Shown piece by piece: positions 1 to 61,077 of a stretch of DNA of 64,000 bases (within the stretch, counting starts at the first letter, position 1; each line of letters starts with the position of its first letter). The DNA is from Geosiphon pyriformis uo1 (taxonomy: Eukaryota > Fungi > Glomeromycota), in assembly GCA_016748015.1 (NCBI GenBank), contig JAAOMT010000602.1, positions 1,129,696 to 1,193,695 of the forward strand, written 5' to 3'. The translations under genes were made by a program, and so were the position numbers. Under the pieces are notes generated by a model, which was not told the DNA's origin, searched no databases, and worked only from the letters and a program-made list of their open reading frames with translations.

Positions 1-735
1 TGCTGTGAAAGTCAACTCTTCTACAGAAATCTTGTCTGTAGGCTACCCTAATGATTGTAATAAGAAAATAAAAGAAAAATAAAAGAAATGTAAAAGAAAT
101 AGAATTCTGTCAAGGGAAACGTTTTCTATCCAGGCCTGGAGTCACTAACAGTTTTACTGAAATTGGTAGCTAATCAATTTCGAAATGTTAGTTGGGTTTT
201 GGGGATTTTCCAAGTACAATAATTAAAGAATTTGGTTTTTCGAATTATTTAATATTTATTTCTTTTTGTGTATAGAAACGGTTTTAAAAGATAAATCTAA
301 AGTAAGATACATTTTCCAGAAGAGAAAAGCTCTTCTTTTATACAACTTGTTATAGTACTAGTCTATGAACTTGCACTTTTTCTCTTTGCTCAAATTTCAG
401 CGAACTAAAGATACATTTTGATGAATTACAAGTTATTTCACTGAACTATTGATTAATTTGGGTGAACTATTCATAATTTCGGCGAATTTCTGTAAATTTC
501 GGCGAATTTCTTATAAATTTCGGCGAATTTTTGAATGTTACAAAGTTCAGGGTATTGTGTAATTTGATCATTCTACTTTCTGTTATACTAATTAGATTAT
601 TTTAATTGAATCGTGATATGTGATAATTGATTAAATAATAAATGATAATTTGAAATGATATTAATATACTAATGAATTATAGGAATTATAAGGGTAATTT
701 CATGCTAATTAATAGCTAAAATTCTACTGGTAACA
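1..735 (-). repeat. 3' LTR of family A element (partial)
   Basis: Matches 8931..9644 and ends CTGGTAACA next to the PPT. Confidence 0.93.
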
Positions 736-1423
736 TAATCTCCTCCTCAAGACTGAGCTCCGTCAAAGTCCAAGCACTATCTGTAATATTGAGATAGTAA
801 TCTAAAATAATTGAAGTTATCTGGTCTGAAAATTGTTGAAATTTCAGTTCTGTGAGTTTGCTAATGTATTGGACTTTCATTGGTTGCAGTATTGGATTTT
901 GTAGAATATTTTCACAAGTATTAAACAAGTCATAGAGTCTAAGAGCTGCTCTAAGTTTGTAGCGAATGTTTGTTGGTCCAGCTGTTGTTTTGAATTCATT
1001 GTGGATTTGTTTTTGTATAACTTCAGGAGTGAGATTTGTTGCTTCAAGTTCCAGTTTTCGTTCATAAAGTGTTTTTCCAATTTGAAAGTATTTATAGATA
1101 GAAATGTGTTCATTGTTCTGTTCATTAAGAAGTAGTAGAAGTTTTTGTTGCATTGTAGCATTTGGTGGAATGTCAATAAGGGCAATTAAAAAATTTTCTT
1201 CTAGTGCCTGCTTCAAAAGTCTTGGTAATCTATTCTCAGAGTGACTTCTTGTTTTTCTTCTATAGGGGTGATAGTTCTGTAAATGATTTGCTATTGGGGC
1301 TGTGGTTTCTTTCTGAATGTAATTAATTTGACTTCCATTAATCGTTATAGATAAGTCAGGGAGTGTTTTCAAGGCTAACATTAATTTTTGGGATATTTGT
1401 TGAATATTTTGGGGAATAATCAT
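716..1423 (-). CDS. Extra ORF downstream of pol in the family A element (235 aa, unknown function)
   Basis: Intact ATG-started ORF co-oriented with pol. It reads through the PPT and stops ~20 nt inside the 3' LTR. Confidence 0.65.
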   Translation of the reverse strand: MIIPQNIQQISQKLMLALKTLPDLSITINGSQINYIQKETTAPIANHLQNYHPYRRKTRSHSENRLPRLLKQALEENFLIALIDIPPNATMQQKLLLLLNEQNNEHISIYKYFQIGKTLYERKLELEATNLTPEVIQKQIHNEFKTTAGPTNIRYKLRAALRLYDLFNTCENILQNPILQPMKVQYISKLTELKFQQFSDQITSIILDYYLNITDSAWTLTELSLEEEIMLPVEF

Positions 1424-1599
1424 GATAAAATTGACTAATTATGAAAAGAGAGAATAAAGAAAATTATTTTTGGATATGGGGTTTTTATTTGTTTTTGGGT
1501 TTGGGTGTTTTGTAATTATTTACTATTTTTGTCTTTGTGTTTTTATTAGAAAATTATTGTAAAATTTAAGTGTTCAAGTTTGGTTGTTGTTCTATTATA

Positions 1600-4444
1600 A
1601 TTATTGGTTCTAAATTTTGGGGAATATCTTCAGGATTAATTAAAGGGGAATGTATACCAATTTGTGGAATTAATGGTTCAGGATTGTTTCTGGAATGATA
1701 GTGTTTCAATCTGTCTCCATGTGCAACTTTTGCTAATATTTTGTTATCAAGTCTTAACTTATATGATCCATTATCTAGAATTTCGTGAATATAAAATAGT
1801 CCATCCTATTTGTTTTCAAATTTCCCACTCCATTGTTTTTCAGCCTTAGTTCTATGTAAGAGAACTTTATTTCCAACTTTAAATTTGTTGGTAATAGGTA
1901 GTAATTTGTTGTCATGTCTTTTTTTTTGTTGAGCTTGAAAATGTTCAATATGAGTTGCTGCTATTCTTTTTTTTCCTTCCAGTGTACTAAGAAGAGTGTA
2001 AGCTCTTTTTTGGAGTGTCTCTTGAAAGTTTTCTTCATTGATTGGTTGCACTGGATATGTTTCTACTGTAAAATTAATTGGTAATATTGCTGTTCTTCCA
2101 TAAGTAAGATCAAATGGTGTGTGTTTCATAGTATCTTGTTTTAGTGTTCTGTATGCTAGTAACACTGATGGAATAAAGATATCTTATTTCTGCTCAAAGT
2201 CTGTTGGGACTTTGGCTAAAGATTCACATAATGTTCTGTTGAAACATTCTACAAATCCATTTGTTTGAGAGTGATAAGGTGATGATAAAGGTCTTTTGAC
2301 ATTGAACTATTCACAAATTTCTTGTATTAAGTTGTTTACAAAATGTGTTCCTTGATCAGATAAGAGTTCAATTGGGCATCCATGTCTACAAATAATGTCT
2401 TCATAGATAAAATTTACTACTGATTTTGCATCTGCTCTTTGGATGGCTTTAGCTTCAGGCCATTTGATAAGATAATCCACTGCAACTGCAATATAACAAT
2501 TTTCTTGGGTTGTGATAGGTAATGGTCTGACTAAATCAATTCCAACTCTGTCAAAAGGTTGTCCAACTTTGATTGGATTTAAAGATTCTGTAGGGCGAGT
2601 TCCTCCTCTTTTTTGATAATTATCACAAAATTTTACATATTGTCGAATGTCTTTTTGCATGTGAGACCAAAAATAATGTTCAAGGGTTCTTTGAATTGTT
2701 TCCTCTTTTCCCAAGTGTGCTGAAGACGGATCTGTGTGCATGTTATATAAAATTGTTTTTTTTTATTCTCTTGTACTAATTTGAATGGCTGGTTTGGTTT
2801 TCTGTAATTTTTATAATAGATTTTGTTTTGGTGTATGAAATATTGTTTTGATTGGTGTTGTAAGTGGTGTTTTTTACTTGGAGACCAGTTTTCTGGCATG
2901 GTAAGAGTCTCCAAATAATTTTTAAGATTGCTGTAGTTTCTGGGATCCATTCTTGTTTGGTTATTTTGTTGATAAGTTGGTAAGTTGTGGTGGAATTGTT
3001 GTTGGTATTAATCTTGTCTCATTCTTAAGAGACTATCAATATTGGTATGTAGTTTTCCTGATTTGTGGTGTACAATATATCTGTAGTCTGCTAGGAAGTC
3101 ATTCCATCAAAACTGTTTGGCACTTTGTTCAGTTTTCTTTTTATTGAGCCATTTAAGGCCAATGTTGTCCATTATTATGTCAAATTCTTTTCCATTCTTC
3201 AGATATTGTTGAAAATGTTTAAGAGCCCAAATAACTGCAGCAGCTTCTAATTCAGTTGAGCCATATTTGAGTTCTGTTGGCTTGAGTGTTCTGCTGGCAT
3301 AGGCAATAACTTGTTCTTGGCCATTTTCATCCAATTGTGATAAGATGGCACCAAATGCTAAGTGTGAGGCATCAGTGGCTAATTGGAATCGTTTGTTGAA
3401 GTCTGGGTAAGCAAGAACTGGGGCTGTTGTTAATTTTGTTTTGAGAATTTCAAAAGCTTTTTGTTGTTCTTCAGTCTATTTGTATGGTACGTTTTTGTTG
3501 GTAAGATAATTGAGTGGTTTGGCAATTTCTGAGAATTCTTTTATGAATTTTTGATAGTAAGAGGCTAATCCCACAAATCCTCTTAGTTCTGTAGTATTTC
3601 TGGGGATTTGAAAGTTTTTGACAGCACTGATTGTTCCTGGATTTGGTTTTATTCCATCTTTACTAACTATGTGTCCAAGAAAGATTAAGCTTGTTTTTCC
3701 AAAGTAACATTTCTCAATATTTAACTTTAATCCTACTTTCTGTAATCATTGAAAAACTTCTCGCAGGTAAATAAGATGGGCTTCAAAGCTTGGTGAGTAT
3801 ACATCAGTATTATCAAGATAAACAACTACTGATTGCCACAAGAGCCCTTCATAGACAACATTCATGAGTTGCTGAAATGTTGCTGGTGTATTGCAGAGTC
3901 CAAAAGGCATAACATTAAACTCATAATTTCCTTCTTAAGTGGTGAATGCTGTTTTGGGTCTATCTTTTGGGTCCATTTCGACTCGTCAGTATCCACTTTC
4001 CAGGTCTAAAGTTGAAAAGAACTTGGCTTTTCCTAGAGCATCTAGCATGTCATCAATTCTTGAAAGAGAGTAGGCATTTCCAATTGTAATACTATTCAGT
4101 TGTCTATAATCAACACAGAATCTGATTTTTCCGTTTTTCTTTTTAACTAAAACTACTGGTGAGGCCCAAGGACTTCTTGATGGTTAAATCAATCCGTTAT
4201 TGAGCATTCTTTGGACCTCTTTTCTAATGAATTGGTGGTTGGCAGGTGGCATTCGATAAGCTTGTTGACGTTTTGGTAAAGCATTTCTTGTATGGATCTG
4301 ATGTTGAACAATGTCTGTTTTTCCCAAGTCATTGTTGTCTTTTGCAAATATATCTGCAAATTCAGCTATCAATTGTTTCAATTGTCTTTGTTGTTGAGGT
4401 TCTAAGAGACCCATATTGATTTGAGAGAGTTTTTCTTCCAACAA
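1600..4444 (-). pseudogene. pol remnant: reverse transcriptase, RNase H, integrase
   Basis: RT motifs SPVVLVKKK/IRFCVDYRQLN/MPFGL; RNase H VIAYASRTL..YGSTELE; integrase GQPFDRVGIDLV, VDYLIKWPEAKAI, LLSDQGTHF, TPFDLTYGR. Many stops. Confidence 0.93.
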
Positions 4445-38199: not shown

Positions 38200-41100
38200 A
38201 TTTGGGTCGGTATTACCACAACAGGTAACCAATCAGGTCGTTTGTAATATTTCTTGAGTTGCATGCCATGAACAGAGTGATCACTGAATATTGTTTCATA
38301 TTAATCTTGTAGGATATATGAACCATTGTTCAAAACTTTGTTGACTATAAAAGGTTCTTTCCAGTGGCTGGAGAATTTATCACCATAGACATTGTTTCTG
38401 TCTGAATGGTATTCCAAAACTAAGTCACCAACACTTAAAGAAAGTGTTTTATAGGTCTTTTTCTTTTTGAGCTTCTCTTGGAACTGTTTTATCTTTTTAA
38501 AGGCAATTATCCATGCTTTTATCAATGAGTCAAGAATGGTACCAAGTCTTCTTTGCAAAATGTTCTTGTAATCTCCTATTGTTATTTCTTTAAAAGGTAT
38601 TGTTTCTATATCTATTTCTATTGGTAGAGTTGCCATTCGTCCATAAAGCAGATAAAAGGGTTCATAACTTGTTATGTCATGATTTACAGTTCTGTAGGTG
38701 AATAAAGCTGAAGGCAATACTTTGTTTCATAGATTGGTTTCTTCACTGGTTTTGGCTAGAGTTTCACATAGTGTTCTATTGAAATGTTCTACTAGGCCAT
38801 TTGTTTGGGGGTGATAAGAGGAAGAGAGTTTATGACGTATTCCCATTTTTCTGCAAAGTTCTTCAACCAGTGTACTGAAAAAAGCTCTTCCTTTATCAGA
38901 TAAAAGTTCTTTGGAGCAGCCATAGTAACAGATAATATCTTTATAAATGAAATTGGCAATTGAGACTGCTGTTTGATCTGGGGTGGCTCTTGCTTCTACC
39001 CACTTTGTAAGATAGTTGGTAGTTGTAATAATATATCTGTTGCCATTAGAAGTTACTGTTAAAGATCCAACAACATCTATACCAATTCTGTCAAATGGTT
39101 GACCAACAGATATTGGATAGATATCTTCCTTGCGATTGGGTTTTCCTTTTCTTTGGCAGATATCACAGGTTTTGATGTATTCAGCAATGTCTTTTCCCAA
39201 GATAGACCAATAATAACAAGCTAAAGTTTTTTGAATCGTTTTTGTTTTTCCAAAGTGTCCTGCTAATGGATCAGTGTGCATATTGTAGATCACAATTTCT
39301 CTTTCTTCAAATCTGATGACTCTCTGGGGGCGGTCAGAATCTTTTCTATTTCTTTTATATAACTGGTTCTGGCGAATTAAATAGAAATTTGATTGTTTGC
39401 GCAAATGTTCTCTTTGCTGTTGAGTATAGTCTGGTGGGTATTGTCCTTTACCCAAAAATTCTATTAAGGCAGAGTAGTTGTCCAAGTCCATTATTGTGTT
39501 TGTTTGTGGGGGAGTTACAAATAATTAAGTTGGTTTGGTTTGAGAGGGTTTTACTATCACTGGATGGTAAGTCTGGAGAGAGCATCGGTGTTTTGATAAT
39601 TAGCTCCTTTGTAGTGTTGAATGTCATAGTCGAATTCATCCAAGTAGAGTATCCAGCGAATTATCCGTTTATGTTCCAGGTTTCTTTTGTTGCATAGCCA
39701 AACCAAAGCTTGGTAATCTGTTATTACCAAAAATTTCACACCCTTAAGATATTTGTCCCAGTAGCTGGTAGCCCAAACTACTGCTAAGCATTCTTACTTA
39801 GTAACTGAGTAGTTCCTTTCTGCTGGTGTAAGAGTTCTACTGACATATGCTACGGCATGTTCTCTGCCATCTTTGTCTTTCTGGGAAAGAACAGCACCAA
39901 GTCCATAGCCAGATACATCAGTATAGAGGAAAAAAGGTTGATCCAGATTAGGTTGCATGAGGATGGGTTCTGTAACCAGTTTTTCCTTCAGAATTTCAAA
40001 TGCTTTTTGTTGATGAATGCTCCAGTGATAATTAATGTTTTTTCTAAGTAGCTGATTGAAAGGAGCAGCAATTTTAGAGAAATTTTTGACAAACTTGTGA
40101 TAATAAGAGGCCAAACCAAGAAAAGAGCATAGTTCATGAACATTTATTGGTTGTCTAATGTTTTGAACTTTTTCAATTTTGGCTGGATCAGGGAAGATTC
40201 CATCTTTTGTAATAAGATGGTCAAGGAACTGAGTAGATTGACGTCCAAAGAATGATTTGATTGGATTGATCTTGAGACCAGCATTTTTAAGAAGGTCAAA
40301 AACCTTTTGCAAATGTTTAAGATGTTCATCCCAGGTTTTTGAATATACCATTATGTCATCCAAGTAGACTAGAACAAAGTTTTCTTTTACTGATTCAAAT
40401 ACTTTGTCCATTAAGTGTTGAAAGGTGAGAGGAGCATTTGTGAGACCAAAAGACATGACTGTAAATTTGTAGGTGCCATACTTGGTAATGAAGGCAGTTT
40501 TCTTTCTGCTTTCTGGATCCATTTCTACTTGCCAGAATTCAGCAGTTAAGTCAATAGTTGAGAAGAAAGCAGCACCATGGAATTGGTTTAGCATTGTATT
40601 AATCTTGGGAAGTGGGTACATGTCTCTTTTAGTAATGGCATTTAATTGGCGATAGTCAACACAAAAGCATAAGGTTCCTCCTTTCTTGGATACCACTACA
40701 ACTGAAAATGCCCATTCACTTTTGGTTTCCTGTATGAATCCAAGGTTTTTCATTCAAGTTATTTTCTTTTTGATAAACTCATCATTGTGCCAGTTGGATT
40801 GATAGGGCTTCAAATGGATGAGGCGAGTTTCTCTGGTGATGATGGTGTATTGTATCACATGTGTATGTCCAGGAGGTTCACCTTCTTTTGAGATAACTGG
40901 GCTGTTTTTAGCCAGCAGGTTTTCAATGTCTATCTTTCTTTCTTCTGAAGAGGGTTCTCTTTGTTCTACAACCAGTGATTGGATTTCAGGTGGTTCGTTT
41001 TCAAAGAACTTTTGAATTTCTTTTATTTCCTTTCAGGGTATCACGCTGATTGGTTCCCAATCTTTGTAATAGATCAGGCAGGACATGTATTTATTGCTAG

Positions 41101-42200
41101 GAGAATACAATGGTTTGTCGCACCAGTACCGGGCACAAGGACCATGCCACCAATAACTGTATTTGGCTTTCTTGCCTGGCTTTTTGTCAAAGGTTCTTCT
41201 GAGCATGTTATAATAAGGCCAGCAGATCAGCTTGCTATTGACAATAATTCCTTCTTTATCTGTCTTGACATTATCTAGTGGTTTGCCATTGCTGGTGAAG
41301 ATGGTATAGGCAAGTTTAGCAGTTTCTTTTTGTTCTTTTTGTTCTTCTTCTTCCTCACTTTCTTCATTATCTGATTCGTCTGATTCATTTTCTTCTGGGC
41401 TCTGCTTGGGTACTGGGAGAGTTGTCCAATGGCAACACTTAACCACAATGGGTTTCTCACCACATCTGATGGTTAGTTCACAGAGTTTATAATCAAGCAA
41501 AGCTTTTGCTTTCTTGAGCCATTCATTGCCAACAATAATGGTGTATTCTTTCACTTCAGATACTTTCATATCAGTTTCAATGCTGATGCCATTGATGTGG
41601 ACAGGAATAGCTTTGGCTATGCCAAGCCCTTTCTTCTTATCACTATGCACATTGGTCATTGGTTGTGTGAATAGTTCATCAATTTTTCTGTTAATTGCTT
41701 CAAAAAAGTGTTTAGCAATAACACTAACAGATAATCCACTGTCTAGGATCAAATTGATGAAGTAGCCAGCCACTTGGGCTTTGCAAATTAGAGAAGTGAC
41801 ATTGCTATTGTCAGCAAGTTCAGCTTGGTGAGGGCGATTGTTGGTTTTGGGTGTCTTTTTCTTTAGAATCAGAGATTTGCGAAGATCTTTTCTGAATTGT
41901 AGATGAGTCATCAATTGACTAAAGATTATATGTGCTGGGGTTTCCATGAGGTCTTTGACAACAGAATAGGGGCCGGATTTTTGTACTATTTCTGGGGGTT
42001 CCAACTTTGGAGGGTTTTTGAAAACTTTGGCTTTTGGGGGCTCATTGTTGTCAGTAGTTGATGTAAAAGCTTTATTGGGGTCCAGAACAAAATCAACTTT
42101 GGCTTTCTTCTTCTTTCTTGTGGATTCAGAGGGGTTGATTGCTAGTTCATCCATGTCATGGTCATCATTAGTTAAGTTAAAAGTGTAAAAGAGGTTTTCT
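38200..42200 (-). pseudogene. pol of family B (protease, RT, RNase H, integrase) with a few stops
   Basis: ORFs 41033..42154, 39794..40753, 38727..39491 and 38301..38717 carry canonical motifs (HHCC, DKG, YHPQTNGLVE). Confidence 0.93.
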
Positions 42201-46521: not shown

Positions 46522-49500
46522 ATGCCCGTTTTTTCTTATTTCGCGAAGAATCTGTCGCGACTAAGCAATGCCGCGGCACAAATTTTTCACTGTCATGGAC
46601 AGTTTTGCGCTTCCCATCAAGTCACCCTCATTATATTGGCCCTTTTTTTAGTCTTTACGCTCTTCCATCCCACCTTTGAAACCTATTATTTAAAGCCGAA
46701 AAATAGCGGTCAAATTCATTTTTGGGAATCCCCTTCATCCCGTTCACCCCTAAGTAAGGAGGTTTTCGTTCAAAAATATGGCACTCGGCCTTCAGTACGC
46801 GTCGTGCAAATTCTGATAAATGCCACTGCAACACATAGAGGGCATCGGATCGGTCAAGGAAAAGGTGTCTTCGATAAGAATCTGCTGCTTTGGACATTAC
46901 AATTACAGGAGCGGATCGCTTCCACCGAGATTGTTTACCCCCCAATTTCCACTTCTCCTTTGACCCCACTCTCAAATGCAAACCCATCAGCAAGCGCTCC
47001 TAATAAATACTCACTCTCCGACTTTTGCTTCAAACCCTTCTCTGATAAAAACTGCTTGGTTCATTCTCCCCTCGAATTTTGGAGTAACAATCACGAAAAA
47101 TTGGCGTCAGATAGCGCCATCATCAACACTCTAGCAAAGGAAAAACCAAAATCTTCATTTAATATCCCCATTCCCGTTTATTCTGTATTTGGAAAACCAG
47201 AATATTCTCAAAAGACTGGTAGAATAATTGGCGCAGAATCAATTATTCTAACATATTTCTTGGAAGACATGAGCAATTGGCCTGAGGGTATGACCGTTGA
47301 AATATGGGAACTTTTATGGCAAAAAGTGATGCAGAATCAAGACATGGGCCATATTGGAGGCTCTCAGGTTGAAGCCGTCAATATTGTAAATCATGGTGAA
47401 TTGGAACATTTATTATACTATGTAAGTTTACGTTATTCTTTGTTTTTACTATCGAACTTCCACACTTAACTTAAATTATTATATTTATGATCCATCAGTT
47501 TAATAATTCCCAGTATGGGATTACAGCTGAATATAGCTTATTAGCTCTTGTATCTCTATGCTGGTTTCTGTACATATCTTTCTCGATTGGAAGATTAAAT
47601 GTGGTCAAGTCAAAGTTTGGCCTTGGATTTTCTGCAGTTGCCCAAATGATTGCATCTTTAATAAGTTCTGTTAGTATTTGTTCTCTTTTTGGAGTCACTT
47701 TTACTCTGTTTCCTTGGTAAGTAAATTTGAAAAGAATTTTAAAAATAAAAATAAAAATTTCTAAGGACATTTTTTTCCAGGGAGATTTTGCCATTTATTC
47801 CGATGATCATCAGTGCTGAAAACTGCATTATTTTGACAAATGCGGTGACCTCAACAACCATGGAACTTGAGGTCAAGGAAAGAGTCGCAATTGGTTTGAG
47901 CAATGTGGGGCTTTCCATTACCAACTACCTTGGTTTGGAGATCCTCTGTTTTTTGCTCTTTTCCGCAACGAATATTGTTTCGGTGCAAGATTTTTCTCTT
48001 TTTCTCTCCATAGCTGTAATTATCGATTACATTCTACAAATGACTTTCTTTATTACCACACTCTCCATTGATCTTCGAAGGCTGGAGGTAAAATTTTTGA
48101 TTCTACATTATAAAATTTTTCATACTTCACAATTCGAATAAATTATTGTTGTTGTTATTATTTGTCTTAGATTTCTGATTTGTATAATCGGAGGCCTCTT
48201 GTTACCAATCATAGCAATAAAAAATTGTCGACTGGTCTTAGTACAACCAATGGGAAGCCTGGTGTTTTGCCGAAACCTATTACTTTTACGGCAAGAAGGA
48301 TTTTTAGCTTTCTAGCGGTAAATCAATAATTTGAAATTTAAAAATCCCTTTATTACTTGCCTCATTTTGGTTATTTTACTGAATACTTACCCAGATCCTT
48401 ATAGTTATGGGTGTCCTTAGTAACTTCTATCCGGCAGCGGTTGATATAAAAATCACAACTTCCATTATGGCTAGTTTCAATCCCCGAAAAGCAGTCATTG
48501 CAGAACAACTGGTCAACAACACGTTCTGGATGGCCGAAACTGCATCAACTGCAGATCCTTTTTGGGAAACAGTAAACCCTAGCAAAGAGCCCCGCTATTT
48601 TGAAATTCGTCCGGCAAAACTAGTAACTATTATTAGAGAGAAAGAAAAGGATGAATTTGAAAGTCGCGATACTGTTTCAGGACAATTTGATCTTCAGCCA
48701 CATAATAAATTTGAAAAATGGAAACGCTACGTCATTATTTCCATCAAATCAACTGCTTGGTTTATTAAATTTGTAGCGGCACCCGCTGTTGGAATAGCAT
48801 TAGGAATATCTTTCTTATTGCATTTCCTCTTATCACCAGATCGATACAATAGGAAGGGCCGCGATTCAAGGGCTCCTATTATAAAATTACCAAAAAAATC
48901 ATCAAATTCTTTAGCTTCTTTTTCCCCTAGAGTGATTACCTTACGTGGTCGTCACTCAGCAGATATTGACCTTTTGTGTGCCAACTCGAAGGGTCTGGTC
49001 ATTTCTACCGCAACTGATAAACACATTACCTCCTGGGACGGAAGACTTGGTACCCCATTAAGGAAGTTGGAGAGATATATGCGTCGATGCTCGACTTGTA
49101 AATGTGGTACGACCGGAGGAATGAAAAATTGCATTTCCTGGCCAGTAAGAGCTCTTTGTGCTAGCGAAAAAGTTGAACTTGCTGCCGCAGGGTTTGAAGA
49201 TGGTGTAGTCCGTGTTTGGGATATTAACTCTGGTCAAGCAAGCCATATCCTAAAAGATACCGTGGATGATGTTGAGTCCGTTATATCAGTAATGACAGGC
49301 CATTCTCCAAAAGAACGTGTCACTTGTTTACAATTTGTTGCACGCTCAAACTCATCGGTCAACAAAAAAGAAGGGTTCTTGGAAGACTCGAGATCTGCCA
49401 TGTTGATCGCGGCATACCGCAATGGATATATTCGTGAGTGGGACCTTAAATCTGGCCAAATTTCAAACACAATTGCCACAAATCAAAAGTCTGGGATTAG

Positions 49501-51247
49501 TGTCTTATGTGTTTTAGATAACGAGTCTACAGATAACAGTCGAAATGATCTGCGAATGTATTCAGGTGCACGGGATGGCACGGTGCGTTGTTGGGTTCGT
49601 AGAATCATAGAAGGGGAAAAGGAATGTATAATTAAGGATAAAGATTCAGCCGAAGCGCGAAAAAGTTCTTGGAAAGCTGTATACACTCTTGTTGGACGAG
49701 ATGGCAATGCTATCACATGCATTGCTGCCAAGGTAGTAGAGATCAAAAAAAATCCTTATGGTATTGTCGTCACCGGTGCAGCTGATGGTGAAGTTAGAGT
49801 ATACGATTATGTGACTGGAGGACATCTCATGACATTAAGTCCAGGTGCTTTATGGAAGCAGAAACGCGAAAAAGAACGCATTCAAGAAAATTTAATATTA
49901 AAAAACGAGAAACTTCTACGGAAGCAATTACGACTACGACAAGCATATCTCAAAAGCAGCATTCTAGAAACCCCTTCTGATTCTGATGAAGATTTATATG
50001 ACGAGGACTTTGAGGAATATGAAGAAACTTCTCACAATGAATTAATCACAAACATTATTATCCATCCTTTAGAGCAAAAAAGTTGCCCTTGTGGAAATAC
50101 CGAAGCAGGAGATGGTTTTTGGATAGTTACTGGCTCACTTGATGAGAAAGTACATGTTTGGAAATTGGATCGAAATGTCATGGATTGTAGCTGCATGGCT
50201 TTGCAAATTTCGAGACCTGCTTCGCTTGCGACGAGACATAACTTTGCTAAGGAAATTTCTGAATTTGGAACTACGAGAGACAATTTAGGATATGATTTCT
50301 CCCATCAATATCGAGTCTTCAATTCGGATAAAGGAATTAGTGGCGTGATAAATGATTTTCCAGGGAAGAATGTTGTCAAATGGAATGGCGTGGTGTCATA
50401 TCGGCCTAAATTTTATGGTCGAGTCACTCAGCCAGGTGGTTCAGCGATAGTATTCATGAGGGATAATGTGGTGGGTGTTCGACAAACAAAAAAGGATAAA
50501 ATAAATTCAATAAAGTATAAATCGCAGGCAACCTCAACACGTAACGGAACCCATAGTGTTGAAGGTGAATGGGAGGTTTGGTTACTAGACCTTAATAATC
50601 CCAAACGTTTCGATAATATCCCTGACAAGCAGCGCAATAGTTTCGATACTGATCAAGAGGTAATGGAATTATTAGTAACGACAATACCATTAGTTGATGA
50701 AAGTGACTTAAAGATTGAGGAAGAGCAAAGACGGAAAGAAACTCTTAGGCGACGTGAGAAAAAGAAATCCACAGACTTACGCGGCTTCGTACCGCAAAGA
50801 CGGCGAGTTCTCAATGAAAATAGGAATTTTTCCAAGGCCAGCATAGTAGCAAAGTTCCCATCATCTACCGTCCCAACGGTTGGAACAACGTCGATTTCAC
50901 CAAACTACAAGGAAAATCCTTATAATCAACATCCTGAACACTCCAATGAAGCTCATATTCATGATGAAGAGGAGACACAAGGGCAAGTTATTGGGCAGGT
51001 TTATGACTATCGACAGAAAATGCTGAGGCGGGCCAGCATGTTGCATCGTGTGTATCCCAAAAATGTAACCAATAGTATAAATAATGAATTAACATTGGGT
51101 CTTGATGATGAGGATCAGATGAACGAACTATTGCCATTTGCGTTTATACGACAAGTGGTTAAAGTTGGGGAGGAAGGCGTTGCTGTTGGATATGGGAATT
51201 TCGTTAAGGTTGTATTATTTGAGGAGATTGATGAACCTACTTTATAA
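46522..51247 (+). CDS. SCAP: SREBP cleavage-activating protein homologue (sterol-sensing domain + WD40), 5 exons
   Basis: Exons 46522-47421, 47499-47716, 47781-48087, 48171-48317, 48395-51247. N-terminal FHCHGQFCASH, CLVHSPLEFW loop, SSD YISF..VKSKFGLG..EILPF..EN, spliced SIDLRRLEISDL (MELADL-like), C-terminal WD40 repeats. Confidence 0.88.
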
Positions 51248-52040: not shown

Positions 52041-53544
52041 ATGGCAACTGCAGTTAAAGAAGCTATTAAGGATCTTAGGAGACGTATCGAGGATAAAGTT
52101 GCTATTATTACTGGTGCTGGCAGGTAAATAATTGAACTAGACCGCTTAAAACGTCGGGTACCTTTTTAACATTAAGAAGATAAATATGAGAGAAAATGAT
52201 TATTCAAACATTAAATTCGGCTTATTTTTAATAGCGGGGTCGGGTTCGAGTCTGCTGTCCTTTTCGCCAAGGAAGGTGCTCGAGTTATTGCTGCTGACAT
52301 AGACCTTAAAGCTGCTGAGAGGGCTGTTGAGAGAATAAAAGACGTCATCGGGCCGTTGCATCTTAGTAAACGCGCTCTCGCATATCAAGTTGATGTCACT
52401 AAAGAAGCAGAAGTAAAAAAATTGGTGGAGACGGCCTTAAGAGAATTTGGTGAGGTTTTGAATTGGATTTCATTTATCAATTATCAATTTTCTAATTACA
52501 TTTTTGTGATGTACCTTATTTCATATTGGAAATAGGAAAACTCGACATTATTTTCAATAACGCGGGGATAATGCATCCGCATGATGAAAATGCCCTCAAT
52601 ACAGATGAAAAAGTTTGGTAAATGTGACCTTAAAAGGCCGGCATTTCAAATTTCAAATTAAATCTTTATGCTTATTTTCAAACATGATTATTCACTTTGA
52701 TATCTTCAATGCATTGAAGGGACGTTACATTTAATACTAATCTCAAAGGTGTCTGGTACGGTTGTAAATATGCTATTGAAGCATTTCATCGTGGTGGAAA
52801 GGGTGGTAGCATTATCAATACTTCCAGCTTCGTAGGAACTTTGGGTTCAGCTACTCCTCAGATTGCTTGTTAGTTCTTTTTTTGTATCTCAATTTCTCGA
52901 ATTAAAAAAACATAATAGTTCTTAATAATCAATTTTCATCATGTAAAACTATAGATACGGCATCAAAGGGGGCTGTTATTGCTTTAAGGTATAACGCTCT
53001 TTTAATTATCATTTTTCCTTTCTTTTAATATCTAAACGATTCAATTGTTATGACATTTTTAAATGTAGCCGTGAGTTGGCCGTCACTCATGCGCGTGAAG
53101 GTATCCGCATCAACGCACTTTCACCTGGACCTCTAAATACCCCATTGCTTCAAAAGTTCCTCGATACAGATGATAAGAAACAAAGAAGATTAGTACATGT
53201 TCCTATCGGACGGTTTGGTAAGCAGTTAGAGAAAGCTTATGGTATATTAACTTCGTTTCAGAAAGATTCATGGGAAATTGCGAATTCTTAGGTGAACCAA
53301 TTGAAATCGCTCAAGCGGCTCTCTTCCTTGCCTCAGACGAGTCGAGCTACATAACAGGGACCGAGTTTAAGGTTGATGGTGGCATTACGGCTGCATACGT
53401 GGTTAGTATTGTCTACAAAGATTAAACTATTACGCTGGCCTATTTAAAATCAAATATTAATATTATTTTTAGACTCCCGAAGGTGCTACCAAGAGTGTCG
53501 CACCAAAGAATTGGAACAAGGGAGACAAAAAAGCCTCTCAGTAA
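52041..53544 (+). CDS. Short-chain dehydrogenase/reductase (classical SDR), about 8 exons
   Basis: Spliced [49 protein letters not shown]; GT-AG introns. Confidence 0.9.
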
Positions 53545-53919
53545 CTTTTGGTCGACTTGGACAACGTTCGTTTGGGATGTATATTATATTTAAAATGTAT
53601 AAAAATGTGAATAAATTATTAAAGAGTAGGTTTCCCTTTTATTATTTGTGATTAAAAGGAAGCAATCAAAAATGAATTTTTGAAAGATGTTATTTAACAT
53701 TAGGATTATAATCGTAACTTGAACATCCATCAGAATTAAAAATAAAATACTTTTGAATAATGAACAATTATATACAGGAGAAAAACCAAAGCAATTTTAA
53801 GAGCTACCAAAATTGAATTAGTCTAACATTTGCATTATAAAATGAGTAATAATAAAGTAGATTTGATGGGAGGTTGTTGAACAATGACTATTTACAATTA
53901 ATCTATGAGGATTTTGTAT

Positions 53920-56900
53920 TTATGAGTTTTGACACGATCCAACAATTAGGGGTAATTCGATTGGTGAAGATGGGGGTGTGGAAGTCTGTGTTATAATAGA
54001 GCGTCCCCGCCTAAGAATCGGTTTTCTAGCATTGTGAAACTGATTATGCTGATGGACATGATGCTGTTGAGAGGGCGCAGCCCGATTATGTTGCATATGT
54101 GACTTTACTAAATGACCAGCCGCAAGAGCTGCACAAAGACTAAGTTCACCAGCCATTACAGCAGCACAAACGATGCGCGCAAGCTTTTGAGCATTAGCCC
54201 CTGGGGTGGTGGGGTGAGGACCCCGCACTCCAAGCATATCCAACATCGCCGCTTGAGGTGGTAGAACTGTTCCACCACCAATCGTGCCTATTTCAATGGA
54301 GGGCATTGTGCAGCTAAGATGCAAGTCTTGACGATTGTTTACTCTGTTAAATGGGAAAGATGAATTTGATCAAACTCGATGACATTATAGTTAAGCAAGA
54401 AAATAAATGAGTTTACAACTTACGATTTCATCAAAGTAATGCAATTAGAACTTTCTACATTTTGCGCTGGATCTTGACCAGTTGCAATATATATTGCAGT
54501 CAATATATTGGCGGCGTGTGCGTTGAAACCGCCGATTGAGCCAGCCATTGCGGATCCAATTAGATTTTTTGAAATATTCAATTCTACAAGTGCTTCAACA
54601 CTAGTCTTTAGAACTTTTTCCACAACAGATCCAGGAATGATACATTCAGCGACGACAGACTTCCCTCGCCCTTCAATCCAATTGATAGCAGCGGGTTTCT
54701 TGTCCGTGCACTACATTAATTTTGCATCTTAAATTAACATATCAAGAAACGTTATAAAGTAATGGTTTTAAAAGATTTCTTACATTATGAACAACGATCC
54801 CGTTGGCGACATAGTTTTCTGTGGTTGAAACAGAGAGATCATAAACTTCCCGCAGGCCATTTTCATATTTATTATTAGCCGAGACATTCTCGAAACTGAA
54901 TTCCTCTTCAGACTCCACTCCGCTGTCAATTAAGTCTATGGCAAGGGTTTTCACCTTTGTAACACCCAATGTGAACGAGAATTGATTCTCGTCACTGAAA
55001 GTGTCCCAAACGTATCCACATTTCTTCAGAAATGTATCGAACTTAGCAGGGGAGACCAGATGGTTCTTTTCTACCTCAGCGTTAAAATAAGCAAGCCAAA
55101 CTGTCCAACGTGATAGATTTTCGTTGGAGTACAAGACTCCCACATTATCTATGAATTTGGAGACCGAACTTGCCGGAATATTAATTTCGACTAAAAAGTA
55201 AACCTCCTTGAAGCTAGTATTGTCAAATCTCTTTGCCGGGCTTGTTTGATAAGTTTTGTCTATCTTCCTTTGATCTGAATAGCACTCTGCCTTATGCATT
55301 TCTTTTAATGTTATTGGAACCCCCAGGCGGTAAAAGGCAGTTTTTAATTCATCAAGAGTTTTCCTAAGCGCTTGGCGCCTTAGATTATCCGCTGCAATCG
55401 TCTCCCTTCGGCCCTCCAATCGTGTAGAAATACGAGCAAGAATAAAATGTTCAGGTATAAGACAACTGCTGTGGCTTGTGTTAAAGGAGGGCACACTGCC
55501 ATTGGCACCACAAAAAGCTGCAAGGAAGCGTCGTACAACTATCTTAGGGGTATTAGCATCAGAAACCCATGTGGGAAGCTGAGTAGTTTTGCGCTCTTTT
55601 GGAAGTCCTGCAAGAAGCAGATGTCGTCCAATATTTCGCGAGAGAGCCACCTTCCACGAATTTCCCTGGGTGGTTTTGGAATAGATAACATCACGTTTCA
55701 ATCCAGGATCCAAGATCTGGGCGTCAGCAAAAATGTGATCTACATCAAGATGATGCCCAAGTTGATGGACCGGTTGATTATTTTGAGAGATATGTCCATT
55801 ACCGAAGTGATGTCCTGCTATCGTCGCGAGAGCAAGTATCTTCTCACGCTCATTGGTCATAGTATATTCACCAAAACTAAAAGCAGCCTCAAGTTGCATT
55901 TCGTGACTGTCAGATGCCGGATCTGCCGTGTTTGTGATGGCCGAACATACAACGCGATGGCCGGGGACAATCTCGCCGTCTTCGAGGATTGTTTCTGAAA
56001 TGAGATCCTCAATATTGACATAATCAGCGTCTTTGACCGTCTTACCTGGAGCAACGGCGAGCACTCGGTGATTAGGAGTCGCAACCAAGTTGCGGCCATC
56101 TTCTAGAATCAACTCGACACACTTTTTAGTGCCATTATCCCAGAAACGAATAACTTCATTGTTGGGCTGGATTTCTTTGTCATCAGCAACTTCGTAAGGG
56201 CGACCCAACTTCGTCAAAGCAGCTTTTTCCGTGTCATCATTAAAATCCTGAACCTCAATAATATCCGTGCCGTCGGCACCAACATCAAATATCTTGACAA
56301 TTGGGGCTTTGACGCGTTCGGTCCAAGACATCACGCTTTGCCCCTGGATATCGTTTTCACGACCTTTAATAGACTCGATGGGTATCGCCATGCCGTTACT
56401 GAGCGTGATTTTTGTACCTTTAGCGACGCAGTAATTTCCAGAAAGCGAAATGATTTGCATGTCAGGGAAATGTTCCGACACTACAGATAGTGCTTTTTCA
56501 CATCCTTTCGAAATCATATTCATCCCCATAGCATCGCCGGTAAATGTGGCAAACCGAATGAAAAGCAATTTACCAGCAAGTGCGGTTTTGATCCCTTGTA
56601 GACGAGCAAATCGTGAGGTAGAATTAAAAGATGTCTTTATTATTTCATAACCTTCATTTTCTAGCCATTTTTGGGCTGCACCAGCTCGCGTAATGTTTGG
56701 AAATTCTACACATGGACCACGAGTCATTCTATCCTTTGTTACTATTGTAATCGCGCCACCACCAGCATTAATTGCCTTACAGCCACGCGAGGTAGATGCC
56801 ACAAGACAACCCTCAGTTGTAGCCATAGGTATGTGGATACTTTCTCCATCAATGTTCATGGGGCCTGCCACCCCAATAGGAATAGGCATATAGCCAATGA

Positions 56901-59652
56901 CATTTTCACAACAGGCACCCATTACTTTCCCGTAATCGTAGTTTTTCAAAGGCAAAAGTGAATTTTCTAGAGATTTTGTGGCAGATGCTCGAGAAATCAA
57001 TGCTCGTCTTATTTTAACAGCCCTTTCAAAATTTCCTAAAACTTTTTCGAGAGCGTATTGAGCGATTTTCCCATTTGTAGCCAGCATCAGTATCTCATCA
57101 TCGCTCAAATTGACGGCGCCTTGACCTGGTGTTTCAAGTATTGCGAGACACTCTTCTTCAGAGCGAAGTTCCAAAACCTTTATTCCAGCATTTAAAGAAG
57201 CTGAAGGAAGCTTAGATGTGATAGCAAATTCCTCAAAATGGGTTTTAGCCTCCAAAGATTTTGCGTTATTCTGGGAGGGGGCAGCAGACGAAGCATCCTC
57301 TTCAGTTTGAGCAATAACTGAATCCTTTTTGGTTTTTGGTTTCAAAAGAGCTTTGGGTGAAGTGATTGAAACTCGGTTGACAATATCGTGCACAATCTTG
57401 GGCTGTTTGTAAGAGTTTAATAAATAAACGTTTAAAAAAATTGAAAGGGATAGGCCAAGTGATATCCACTTGGATAAGACTGGATCCTGTACGAAGTAAG
57501 ACCAAAAGTCCATGGCTGAGTCCAAGCTCTTATAAAGAGCTTGGGTTACAGGGCTATAACCAGACGTTATGCTAAATATTAGCGGAGGAGCCACATCAAT
57601 AATCAAAGGTAAATGAGCCCGAGAGCTTTGTCTATGTTGTATGAGAAGTTCATCAAGTATTGGGGATATTGTGGAGTCATTAAGGGCTAGCTGGTCTTTC
57701 TTGACATCCAAGTCTTTTAGTGCTTTTGGCTCGTCGTTATTGTGTAATGTTGTGCAATAATTCATTATGTGCATTATGACGAAACCGATTATGATTAATA
57801 ATTTTAAGCGCGCAATCATTGGATTGTCGTATTTTTTTTTCTCATCAGTAATAATGGTGTTATCACGAAATGCTTTAATTATATTTTGACGAATGTTTGC
57901 GGGGCTGCTTTTGAGTTCTTCATCCTTTTCTACAGAGGTTTTTTTTGTGTTTGCTTGACGTATCCGAGTCAACTATTATTAATTTGTAAGATTCAATCAT
58001 TAATAATTCAATTCAAATCTTAGAAAAAGAAATGAGATCTGGAATTTACCTCGAGTTTCAATGTCAACATAGCAGTATAGAATGTGTATAGGAAAAGGCA
58101 ATCGTATAACAAGATGAAAGCGGCCAAAAAACAAAACTCTTGTAAAGCTGTAACGCCAGAAGCTACACCAAAAATAAGGATAGCGGTTTCGATCAAGTAG
58201 GCACGAACAATGGAATTTGCCGATTTGCTAACACCTGCAAGCACATTATCACGAACATTATAAGGGATGGAAGCAGGGGACCTTGCCTCTGCAGAAGTCA
58301 TTGGATCTGATTTGGATTTGGATGCCTGGATTACAGCCCTCGTGAGGCTAACTGGCTTTTCGAACCCAATAGTGATGACCAAGAACGGGATGGCTTCACT
58401 ATATGTGGGAATATTATTGGGTTCAAAAATCAAGAATTCGGCTTAAAAAGAGTTGTTGAGTGATATAAATTACCTTAAGAGTATAGGATTCACGTTCACA
58501 TTGAATAAATTGACAGTTAATATCGCGCACATGAAGGCAAAAAATCCGTTTGCTATTACGCAAATTGCTAATATTAATTGAAGGAGATTCAGGTTAATGC
58601 CAATATATATATATTCAAAAAAGCATTAAATGAAATAATTTGTTATAAAATCATACCAAGAATGAATCGAGAACCAATTTTACGCATATTTAGAAATAAG
58701 GCGAGGAAAGTAAGAAGCATTAAGATGTAGCCAGCCAGAATGACCAAAATGTCCAGAGTTTCTGCCTTCTAAAAAATTTATCGATACAATATAAATATTT
58801 CTTTGTCTGAGAAATGATGAAACCCAACTATAAATCAAAAAAATTTACATGTATTAAATCCTGAACTTTCAAGAGAAGAGTACCAGCTGCTAAAGCTAAA
58901 GAGCCAAGAGATCCTTTCTCCGAATAAGATTGATGCCTTCTACCCGTTGATACCAATTCATTGTAATTGAGAGCGGCAATTTTTTTTTCCCATATATTCG
59001 ACCAATGTACACGGAATGGACCATTGACATTTAACGCATATGTAAGAATCAGGGAGGCGTCATCAATATTGAATTTGTTTAAGTCGGTTGTTTTTAGAAG
59101 CTCTTCAACATTCAAAATGTCTAGAGGCTCAGAAATCATTTGATTAATGCGTAATTTCTCCGATTCATGATCATAGAATGCCAAGGAGGTTCTGGTAAAA
59201 CAAGTTGTATTGCCATCTTCTACTTTATGGCACAAATGATCATTAAATTTCAATTTGTTTGCACCGTCGTTTATTAATAGTTCGTTCTCAATAAGACTTT
59301 GAAAATTAAGCACTGTCTTTAATATTTTTTGACTGAATAATGGTCGTGATTTTTTTATAGACTGTTCAGCGGGATTTAATAAAACAATCATCTTAAGCTG
59401 TATGTGGTTGGCTTTGGGAAGCGAGTCGTGTTTTGTGAGGGTAAAAAATTGGTCAGAATCTGGTCGAGCTATCATTTTTGTGGGTTCCATTATCGGTGTA
59501 GGATCCACGAATAAGTTGGACTCTAGGATCGAACGGAACAGGGCAGCATATGAGAATGAAGCGATTATTAGACAACATACAATCATTTCAATTGGATTCC
59601 GTGAAGAGAATCTTGCGGCCTTTCGAGCAAGCTCGTTCGTGGTTTGTAGCAT
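53920..59652 (-). CDS. HMG1: Class I HMG-CoA reductase with SSD membrane domain and an intein, 7 exons
   Basis: Exons approx. 59652-58849, 58768-58657, 58568-58474, 58398-58050, 57972-54784, 54710-54424, 54343-53920. [19 protein letters not shown]; catalytic [59 protein letters not shown]. Confidence 0.96.
54711..54783 (-). other. 73-nt phase-0 spliceosomal intron at the intein C-terminal splice junction
   Basis: Minus strand reads CAT AAT|GTAAGA...TTAATGTAG|TGC ACG GAC AAG AAA; removal gives HN|[17 protein letters not shown]. Confidence 0.92.
54784..56430 (-). mobile_element. Intein (549 aa) with degenerate LAGLIDADG homing endonuclease, in HMG-CoA reductase
   Basis: In-frame 1647-nt insertion between GNY and CTDKK. 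Block [14 protein letters not shown]; block [14 protein letters not shown]; LAGLIDADG-like IAGHHFGNG and [10 protein letters not shown]; blocks F/G VYDLSV...[11 protein letters not shown]; Cys+1 after intron removal. Confidence 0.95.
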
Positions 59653-61077
59653 GATTTTTATGGTAGGAAGGAAAAAACTTTTTTCGTGTTAAATTCTTGC
59701 AACGTTTAGGTGATGAAATTTAGGGAGTGACAGATTTTTGATATTTTGAGGTTTTTCTAGAGAAAAAAAAGAAATCTCCCTATTTATAAATATTATAGTA
59801 AAGAATATTTTTTGAGATCCACATGCAGATAATAGATTTGAGGGGAACTTTGAGTTAATCGGCGATCATTGAAAATCTCAAATTTTTTTTTCTGATATTA
59901 AGGTTTATGATTTAGCTTTTTTTGAGGGAAGAATTCTTATCAAGGACATCGAAGGGAGGGCAGACTTATGATTCATATAAATAATTACAAAATGAAAATT
60001 TCTTCCATAAAAAAAAAAAATTTATTTTAAATAAAAGTTCCGAGTTTTGTGTTTAATATCGGACAAATAAATTATCATGGTGTTTCCAATATTAGTCAAG
60101 AATATAATTGTATCCACAATTAGTATTATCTCCCTTTTAAAAGAATCCTGGGAATTGGTAACCATTCATTAATGCAGTAACCCTGAAATGTAATTATGTA
60201 ATGCAACATAAATCTAAATACACATTTCATGTCCGAGTTGGAAACAATGTGTTTTTTGCGGTTTTAATTATTAGAATTACAATACACATCACAATAGTTA
60301 AGAACTTCCAAATGTTAAATTATATCATATTATTGATTATAAATTAATTAGCGTCTTTGGCACTTTAAACATTTATTCAAGCAAATAATCACTTCCTTTT
60401 TTATTCAAATTTGCATTGTTAAAATAGTTTACCTTTTTAATATTGTAATTCAACCCTCTGGATCCATTGTTTCTCACAGTCCGAAAAAGATTTATGTTCA
60501 TTAATTTAAAGTTCAAATTATAGATTTGTTTTTCTTGTAACATCTCTGCAATCACAGAACTTTAAAAATTTAGCTAAATCTCAAATTTAGAAAGTTAGGG
60601 TTTACATTTGGGTTTATCAAACCTTCGCAATTTGTCTTTGACTATGAACAAAGAATTGCATCAACTTTAATTGAACTCACTTTTAGAATCTCGAAAGCTA
60701 ATTGGAGGGGAATTTGAGAAAAGCAGTTTGCCTGATTCGTTGCTATTGGATAGTTTAATCCAAATTTTAACCTAAATTCTCCCTCAATAAAAGTTGTTTC
60801 TTCATACAAATGATGGTTTATCAAAAATGGATAAATTGGAACTTTAAGTTTTGAATCATTTGATCCTTGGGAAGTGTATCAAGAATAAAGTTTTCGGAGA
60901 CCATGGAAAGCGCCAAGATGGTTTCAACTTCTTTCATTATTTTTAGTTTTGGAAAACTTTATAAAAACCTTAAAAACTGATCCAGAATTGCCGCTTTTCC
61001 GATATTGTCTCCTGGATTAACGTAAGTTGGTGACTGATGTATCCGAGAATTTCCAATATCCGTTTTAGTACCCGGGT

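Follow-up and report, generated by a model that had tools for sequence, protein, structure and literature searches.

Among the closest described systems are the VMA1 intein PI-SceI and the full-length inteins of PRP8, which start with a cysteine (Cys1), carry a TxxH motif, end in His-Asn followed by a further cysteine (Cys+1) and have a HINT fold that is broken by a two-motif LAGLIDADG domain. Fungal GLT1 (glutamate synthase) and CHS2 (chitin synthase) are rare cases of nuclear intein hosts that are metabolic or biosynthetic enzymes (PMC5784728, Table 1). In Bathycoccus PRP8, an intron and an intein occur at one codon but never together (Monier et al. 2013, PMC3749507), and Anaeramoeba paralogues have introns at or beside empty intein sites (PMC10710043). 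Here we describe an intein of the same build as those of VMA1 and PRP8 in HMG-CoA reductase (HMGR) of the fungus Geosiphon pyriformis uo1 (Glomeromycotina, Archaeosporales). It lies in a stretch of 64,000 nucleotides, which we call the window (assembly GCA_016748015.1, contig JAAOMT010000602.1, positions 1,129,696 to 1,193,695 of the forward strand); unless stated otherwise, coordinates are those of the window. We found that this intein interrupts the catalytic cis-loop of HMGR, for which the genome has a single gene, and that a spliceosomal intron abuts its C-terminal junction. We consider it probable that it is a class-1 intein with a decayed LAGLIDADG domain, which is immobile and still undergoes protein splicing.

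On the minus strand, positions 56430 to 54784 read as 549 stop-free codons from Cys1 to His548-Asn549. The boundaries and length proposed in an earlier, sequence-only reading of the window were thus exact. The insert scored as PF14890 Intein_splicing (E = 6e-17, 62 bits, against a cut-off of 35.8) and splits the PF00368 HMG-CoA_red profile at positions 201 and 195. Its parts are as follows:

54784..56430, minus strand: intein of 549 residues, with a LAGLIDADG-type endonuclease domain set into its HINT splicing domain
56428..56430, minus strand: Cys1 codon, the block A nucleophile (Cys in 43 of 44 aligned family members)
56068..56079, minus strand: block B, T118-P-N-H121, the TxxH motif (T in 43 of 44, H in 44 of 44)
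54784..54858, minus strand: blocks F and G, residues 525-549 (D531, H548, N549), placed by alignment to the Ssp DnaB intein and by the family alignment
54708..54710, minus strand: Cys+1 codon TGC, corresponding to human Cys688 and opening exon 5

The family alignment comprised the HMGR intein and 43 relatives, 44 sequences in total. Cys1, Thr118, His121, Asp531, His548 and Asn549 are kept, as are most of the remaining conserved positions in the splicing domain; the residue before the TxxH motif is Ala117, where 37 of the 44 aligned inteins have Cys. An AlphaFold2 model built from this alignment (predicted local distance difference test (pLDDT) 78, predicted template-modelling score (pTM) 0.84) gave TliVMA as its best Foldseek match (probability 1.00, E = 7e-12), then PI-PfuI and PI-SceI, over a range of 7e-12 to 1e-9, with free LAGLIDADG enzymes such as I-DmoI ranking below the inteins. 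Having an exact in-frame insertion, Cys1, TxxH, the block F Asp, His-Asn, Cys+1 and a predicted HINT fold, the insert in Geosiphon HMGR is a genuine class-1 intein. Residues ~25-95 (56145-56355) hold about 50 residues more between blocks A and B than the relatives do; this extra segment is acidic and was modelled at low confidence (pLDDT ~50), and a second acidic low-confidence linker lies at residues 481-509.

The host is a class I HMGR, with PF00368, the cis-loop S-G-N-Y-C-T-D-K-K and a sterol-sensing N-terminal domain. Its product is identical to the public protein G9A89_010399 (1735 residues), which is named there merely as a 'hypothetical protein' and for which the precomputed Pfam domains are PF12349 (sterol-sensing), PF00368 (HMG-CoA reductase) and PF14890 (intein splicing). 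The gene is laid out as follows:

59652..53920, minus strand: HMG-CoA reductase gene, six exons, encoding a precursor of 1735 residues including the intein
59652-58849, 58768-58657 and 58441-58050, minus strand: exons 1-3
57972-54784, 54710-54424 and 54343-53923, minus strand: exons 4-6
56431..57972, minus strand: N-extein part of exon 4, comprising the linker and the catalytic N-terminal half and ending S-G-N-Y (PF00368 positions 1-201, E = 6.6e-70)
54424..54707, minus strand: remainder of exon 5, the C-extein from T-D-K-K onward, with Asp690, Lys691 and Lys692 of the cis-loop (PF00368 positions 195-287, E = 4.5e-36)
54344..54423, minus strand: intron 5, 80 nucleotides, phase 2, with position and phase common to Ambispora and Glomus
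53923..54343, minus strand: exon 6, the catalytic C-terminal part and tail
53922-53920, minus strand: stop codon

The reading frame is intact over its 1735 codons. Exon 4 (57972..54784) stays open throughout, from the membrane and linker region through the N-terminal half of the catalytic domain into the 549 intein codons, and the open frame around the intein, which also holds that catalytic half, spans 1076 codons. Exon 4 reaches 3.2 kilobases because Geosiphon is without a phase-0 intron; this intron, at V-K-L-L-I/I-A-G-F, is common to Ambispora and Glomus cerebriforme and has been lost at about residues 470-500. The C-extein is 87-88% identical to the HMGRs of Ambispora and Mucorales. A check for HMGR paralogues, which the sequence-only reading had recommended, returned one locus: in a profile scan of the 128-megabase assembly, PF00368 matched just three exons, all of them in this gene, and neither a second HMGR paralogue nor an intein-free copy was found.

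The position of the insert in the enzyme is equally precise. The 200 residues ahead of it, ending V-S-G-N-Y, align to human HMGR up to residue 249 of 8pkn_A, and the exon past it, beginning C-T-D-K-K, aligns from residue 250; in 1dq8_A the junction falls at 266/267, likewise on consecutive residues. Because the two extein halves meet on consecutive residues of the human enzyme, no host residue has been lost or duplicated and the insertion is exact. In human numbering the intein sits between Tyr687 and Cys688. The cis-loop of class I HMGRs comprises Ser684, Asp690, Lys691 and Lys692, of which Lys691 is catalytic (PMC9500038), so the earlier assignment of the site to this loop is borne out by the alignment to human chains and by the published residue roles. 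In the precursor, 549 residues part Ser684 from Asp690 and Lys691, and it can therefore safely be inferred that the unspliced protein would be catalytically inactive.

We found that the C-terminal junction is not continuous in the DNA. Past the Asn549 codon (AAT, 54786-54784) the genome reads GTAAG, and the TGC of Cys+1 (54710-54708) comes after an intron:

54711..54783, minus strand: spliceosomal intron GTAAG...TAG, 73 nucleotides, phase 0, exactly between Asn549 and Cys+1

Cys1, TPNH, D531, HN and Cys+1 are all present, as the sequence-only reading had listed them, but its Cys+1 is not contiguous with the intein in DNA. Retention of the 73-nucleotide intron would place Val at +1 and a stop after 13 codons. 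To support this intron we have contigs of the HMGR locus from one public run, which is labelled merely as a guess at RNA; because its contigs skip GT..AG introns, the run is clearly complementary DNA (cDNA). One transcript contig of 1078 nucleotides contains exon 6, exon 5 and the last 418 nucleotides of the intein, and joins 54784 to 54710, skipping 73 nucleotides with CT..AC ends on the plus strand at an unambiguous position. A second, of 903 nucleotides, lies within the intein (55271-56173). Thus, the HMGR gene is expressed and the 73-nucleotide intron is real. Because the intein is still present in the mRNA, it must leave at the protein level and not at the RNA level.

By contrast with the splicing domain, the endonuclease domain has lost residues at its catalytic core. 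The relevant features are:

55006..55923, minus strand: degenerate LAGLIDADG homing-endonuclease domain, residues ~170-475, with fold matches to I-DmoI, I-Tsp061I and the PI-SceI endonuclease domain
55786..55839, minus strand: LAGLIDADG motif 1, residues 198-215, with Asn211 at the catalytic Asp position (Asp in 35 of 44 aligned inteins)
55483..55533, minus strand: LAGLIDADG motif 2, residues 300-316, with Asn310 at the catalytic Asp position (Asp in 32 of 44 aligned inteins)

In the family consensus both motifs end in Asp-Gly. In the model, helices 191-211 and 296-310 end at Asn211 and Asn310, the C-terminal ends of the two central helices, so that both helices of a LAGLIDADG enzyme are present and neither ends in an acidic residue. 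Two further near-invariant residues are replaced, Arg203 by Thr in motif 1 and Glu301 by Arg in motif 2. Among columns that are at least 80% conserved, 9 of 22 are changed in the endonuclease domain and 3 of 22 in the splicing domain; with both catalytic columns added, the figures are 11 of 24 and 3 of 22 (Fisher P = 0.026). Because both catalytic Asp residues are Asn, the endonuclease is, judged from its sequence, most likely dead. The loss of the catalytic Asp residues, the other endonuclease losses and a DNA target split by an intron together suggest an immobilized intein, and the element is therefore likely to be competent in splicing and no longer mobile. The sequence-only reading, which was right about the identity and site of the intein, had omitted both the junction intron and the decayed endonuclease, and both change the biology.

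The HMGR intein has only distant relatives. A search with phmmer, run exhaustively over 1.84 billion representative proteins, yielded 325 of them, the best being 32% identical, and none of the 150 matches listed out of these 325 had an HMGR extein. Precise boundaries could be set for 54 relatives: every one begins with Cys, 53 have His-Asn as their last residues, and in 52 the next residue is Cys. The hosts of the nearest inteins are family-B DNA polymerases, MYST and GCN5-type acetyltransferases, ribonucleotide reductase, a PI3/PI4-kinase-domain protein and Prp8 (metagenomic, about 30% identical). A quick tree places the HMGR intein beside two Prp8 (PROCN-domain) inteins, on long branches. 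A word-based search of 5.8 billion proteins found no close relative other than the Geosiphon protein itself, and a scan of the Joint Genome Institute (JGI) metagenomes found no relative. Among the best 120 of 2128 long HMGR homologues, only that of Geosiphon has an intein domain. At 0.42, third-position GC content is higher in the intein than in the exteins (0.32-0.35), a mild difference that fits, weakly, a foreign origin of the intein.

One other intein of the same family was found in the genome, in the spliceosomal protein SF3B1 (K-V-E-E-S/C-L-T-G-D...V-V-H-N/C-I-D-L-V-G-R, with slashes at the junctions):

G000:C416, ~40543-41859, minus strand: SF3B1 intein (L006: open reading frame 172..1743, upstream exon 1884..2909)
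L006, ~1765..1931, minus strand: intron GTATGT...TTTAG, ending 6 nucleotides upstream of the SF3B1 intein Cys1 codon

An SF3b intein is on record just from the oomycete Hyaloperonospora (supplement of PMC5784728). The LAGLIDADG motifs of the Geosiphon SF3B1 intein are degenerate too, and both Geosiphon inteins have an intron 0-6 nucleotides from the insertion site. We considered whether the HMGR intein arose by spread within the genome and rejected this, as the SF3B1 intein is 21-26% identical to it and is not its sister in the quick tree.

The intron at the HMGR junction has a counterpart in the intein-free relatives. Four further introns of the Geosiphon HMGR gene lie at the same positions, and in the same phases, as introns of Ambispora. 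In Ambispora gerdemannii and A. leptoticha, which belong to the same order and have no intein, the Cys688 codon is interrupted in phase 2 (TG^C or TG^T) by an intron 74 or 68 nucleotides long, 2 nucleotides downstream of the intein insertion point:

L010, 3943-4018, and L012, 3838-3907: Ambispora Cys688-codon introns

No intron occupies the cis-loop site in Glomus cerebriforme, Acaulospora, Cetraspora, Jimgerdemannia or Lobosporangium. The DNA target at the HMGR site is thus split by an intron in Ambispora and uninterrupted in other Glomeromycotina. From the mapped orthologues, the Cys688-codon intron is specific to Archaeosporales, and its position differs by 2 nucleotides between the intein-bearing and the intein-free genus. 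These positions would fit either the sliding of one ancestral intron or two separate gains. Sequence similarity between the Geosiphon and Ambispora introns is uninformative, as clearly orthologous introns also score no better than shuffled controls.

We also searched metagenomes with a DNA pattern for the HMGR cis-loop plus an intein-like codon. There was no intein among the matches listed, of which there were at least 118, a weak negative; 115 were ordinary HMGRs (C-V-D-K-K or C-I-D-K-K) and 3 had an intron in the Asp690 codon. In these three metagenomic eukaryotic HMGR genes (L053 ~999, L071 ~3838 and L094 ~3302), S-G-N-Y-C-I is followed by GTAAG, which places the intron 7 nucleotides downstream of the intein site. 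These Asp690-codon introns indicate that the coding region of the cis-loop has gained introns more than once.

One possible explanation for the Archaeosporales pattern is that the intron and the intein at Tyr687/Cys688 are causally linked. Cutting by the endonuclease in an ancestor of Archaeosporales may have provoked intron gain during break repair, or may have selected for a protective intron. Ambispora would then have been left with the Cys688-codon intron, and Geosiphon with the first known intein that gets its +1 nucleophile codon only via the spliceosome. We regard this link as doubtful. If it is true, protein splicing of an essential enzyme of the sterol pathway depends on RNA splicing, and intron retention gives a dead-end product with Val at +1 and a stop 13 codons past Asn549.

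How the locus would work can be outlined from these data. HMGR would be transcribed, and removal of the 73-nucleotide intron by the spliceosome would bring the Cys+1 codon into frame. Translation would yield the 1735-residue precursor, whose catalytic domain would face the cytosol from the endoplasmic reticulum membrane. The intein would then excise and ligate S-G-N-Y to C-T-D-K-K, rebuilding a cis-loop with Ser684, Asp690 and Lys691. That the intein splices autocatalytically we infer from its intact residues, from a transcript that retains it and from its conserved single-copy host; an insert of 549 codons that stays intact in the sole HMGR, itself conserved, argues strongly for it. The intein is probably immobile, vertically inherited and retained only because loss of splicing would destroy an essential single-copy enzyme.

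Several points weigh against this account. The case for protein splicing is drawn from DNA and RNA contigs. The RNA contigs reach to 56173, with the junction between N-extein and intein at 56430 outside their coverage. Ala117 stands in place of the block B Cys of most relatives; in the Cne Prp8 intein, changing this Cys to Ala slowed splicing and did not stop it (PMC6805012). For the endonuclease, the contrast with the splicing domain is not significant without the two catalytic Asp columns (Fisher P = 0.09). The case for a dead enzyme leans on published LAGLIDADG Asp-to-Asn mutants (I-CreI D20N; PI-SceI D218/D326), which reportedly lose cleavage. Finally, the sole transcript contig across exons 5 and 6 uses an intron-5 acceptor 17 nucleotides downstream (54423..54327, 97 nucleotides versus 80). 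This form shifts the frame, with a stop after L-M-K-S-L-A-S, and the annotated 80-nucleotide intron restores the sequence that matches orthologues. From that match, and from a position and phase common to Ambispora and Glomus, the 80-nucleotide intron is the productive form, and the 97-nucleotide form may be an abundant unproductive isoform; assembled contigs give no proportions of productive and unproductive mRNA.

This unproductive transcript is also what favours a different view, that the gene is dead or that the insert stays in the protein and is tolerated there. The only assembled transcript has the frameshifting acceptor and, in addition, a one-nucleotide difference at 54005. By contrast, this is the sole HMGR, its exteins are highly conserved, the 1735-codon frame is intact and the splicing residues are all conserved, and 549 residues between Ser684 and Asp690/Lys691 are hard to square with catalysis; we consider a dead gene or a tolerated insert highly improbable. 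The nucleotide difference itself lies at 54005-54008, where the transcript contig has GGG and the genome GGGG. Should the transcript be correct, the C-terminal tail of HMGR, which is not conserved, would stop earlier than in the public model; the difference may be a homopolymer error in either source. An assembly artefact or contaminant has a vanishingly small chance: the N-terminal junction is known from the genome assembly alone, but independent transcript contigs link the intein to the C-extein exons, the four other introns agree with Ambispora in position and phase, and the public annotation gives an identical gene model.

The sequence-only reading had suggested that redox state, metals or temperature might gate splicing and so switch sterol and isoprenoid synthesis post-translationally. 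Oxidation and metals can in principle affect Cys1/Cys+1 chemistry, the Cne Prp8 intein is inhibited by copper and zinc through Cys1 (PMC6805012), and the host is a rate-limiting, single-copy enzyme interrupted at a catalytic site. However, none of this is specific to the HMGR intein, as such sensitivity would apply to any Cys1 intein, and homing alone would produce an insertion in a conserved active site. The N-extein S-L-S-G-N-Y has no nearby Cys for a redox trap, and the block B Cys is Ala117. Gating of the Cne Prp8 intein by a disulfide between Cys1 and the block B Cys was itself ruled out (PMC6805012). A regulatory intein is therefore unlikely. A selfish element that is still mobile, with an active endonuclease homing into empty HMGR alleles, is in our view quite improbable. 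The predicted fold keeps both LAGLIDADG motifs in full, and Asn occurs at each of the two catalytic columns in 4 of the 44 aligned inteins, the HMGR intein included. Set against this, Asn replaces Asp at both of its catalytic positions, several invariant residues of the endonuclease are gone, the DNA target is broken by the junction intron in Geosiphon and by the Cys688-codon intron in Ambispora, and no close relative was found, the best match being 32% identical. An immobile class-1 intein that still splices remains our preferred explanation.

Elsewhere in the region, an antisense open reading frame at 55447..55998 matched no Pfam family, and there were no Rfam matches in 53000-60500. The neighbouring gene at 48407-51247 (plus strand) encodes a 946-residue WD40-repeat protein with no evident link to the intein.

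HMGR is absent as an intein host from Table 1 and the text supplements of the 2018 survey of eukaryotic inteins (PMC5784728), and is likewise absent from the main text of the 2023 Anaeramoeba study (PMC10710043); full-text literature searches for an HMGR or Geosiphon intein returned nothing relevant. The earlier suggestion that HMGR is an unrecorded host has thus held up. The element is of a well-known kind, and what is new is its host and its site, in a sequence that is public but unremarked. A short list of eukaryotic intein hosts, mostly spliceosome, polymerase and ATPase proteins, now gains an enzyme of sterol and isoprenoid synthesis that is rate-limiting and anchored in the membrane. Because this is the sole HMGR gene, the mevalonate pathway of Geosiphon should depend wholly on protein splicing, and so offers a clean natural setting in which to ask whether the rate of splicing ever limits metabolism. 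The abutting intron, together with an intron-only sister genus in Ambispora, provides a datable case of intein immobilization. In practical terms, the locus offers a new eukaryotic Cys1/Cys+1 intein, predicted to splice, that comes with native flanks from the loop of a cytosolic enzyme.

The host itself resembles human HMGCR and yeast Hmg1/2 in having sterol-sensing membrane and catalytic domains and the cis-loop S-G-N-Y-C-T-D-K-K. Compared with the VMA1 and PRP8 inteins, the HMGR intein differs in its host site in the cis-loop, in being at most about 32% identical to anything known, in the loss of the catalytic Asp residues and in the intron that abuts its C-terminal junction. The GLT1 and CHS2 inteins are similar in residing in metabolic or biosynthetic enzymes, but their hosts are different ones. 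The contrast between Ambispora, with the intron only, and Geosiphon parallels that between the intron-only and intein-only PRP8 alleles of Bathycoccus. These observations bear on the interplay of introns and inteins at one codon, until now described only as mutual exclusion: in Bathycoccus and Anaeramoeba the two are mutually exclusive, whereas in Geosiphon HMGR they coexist 0 nucleotides apart and the Cys+1 codon is supplied after RNA splicing.

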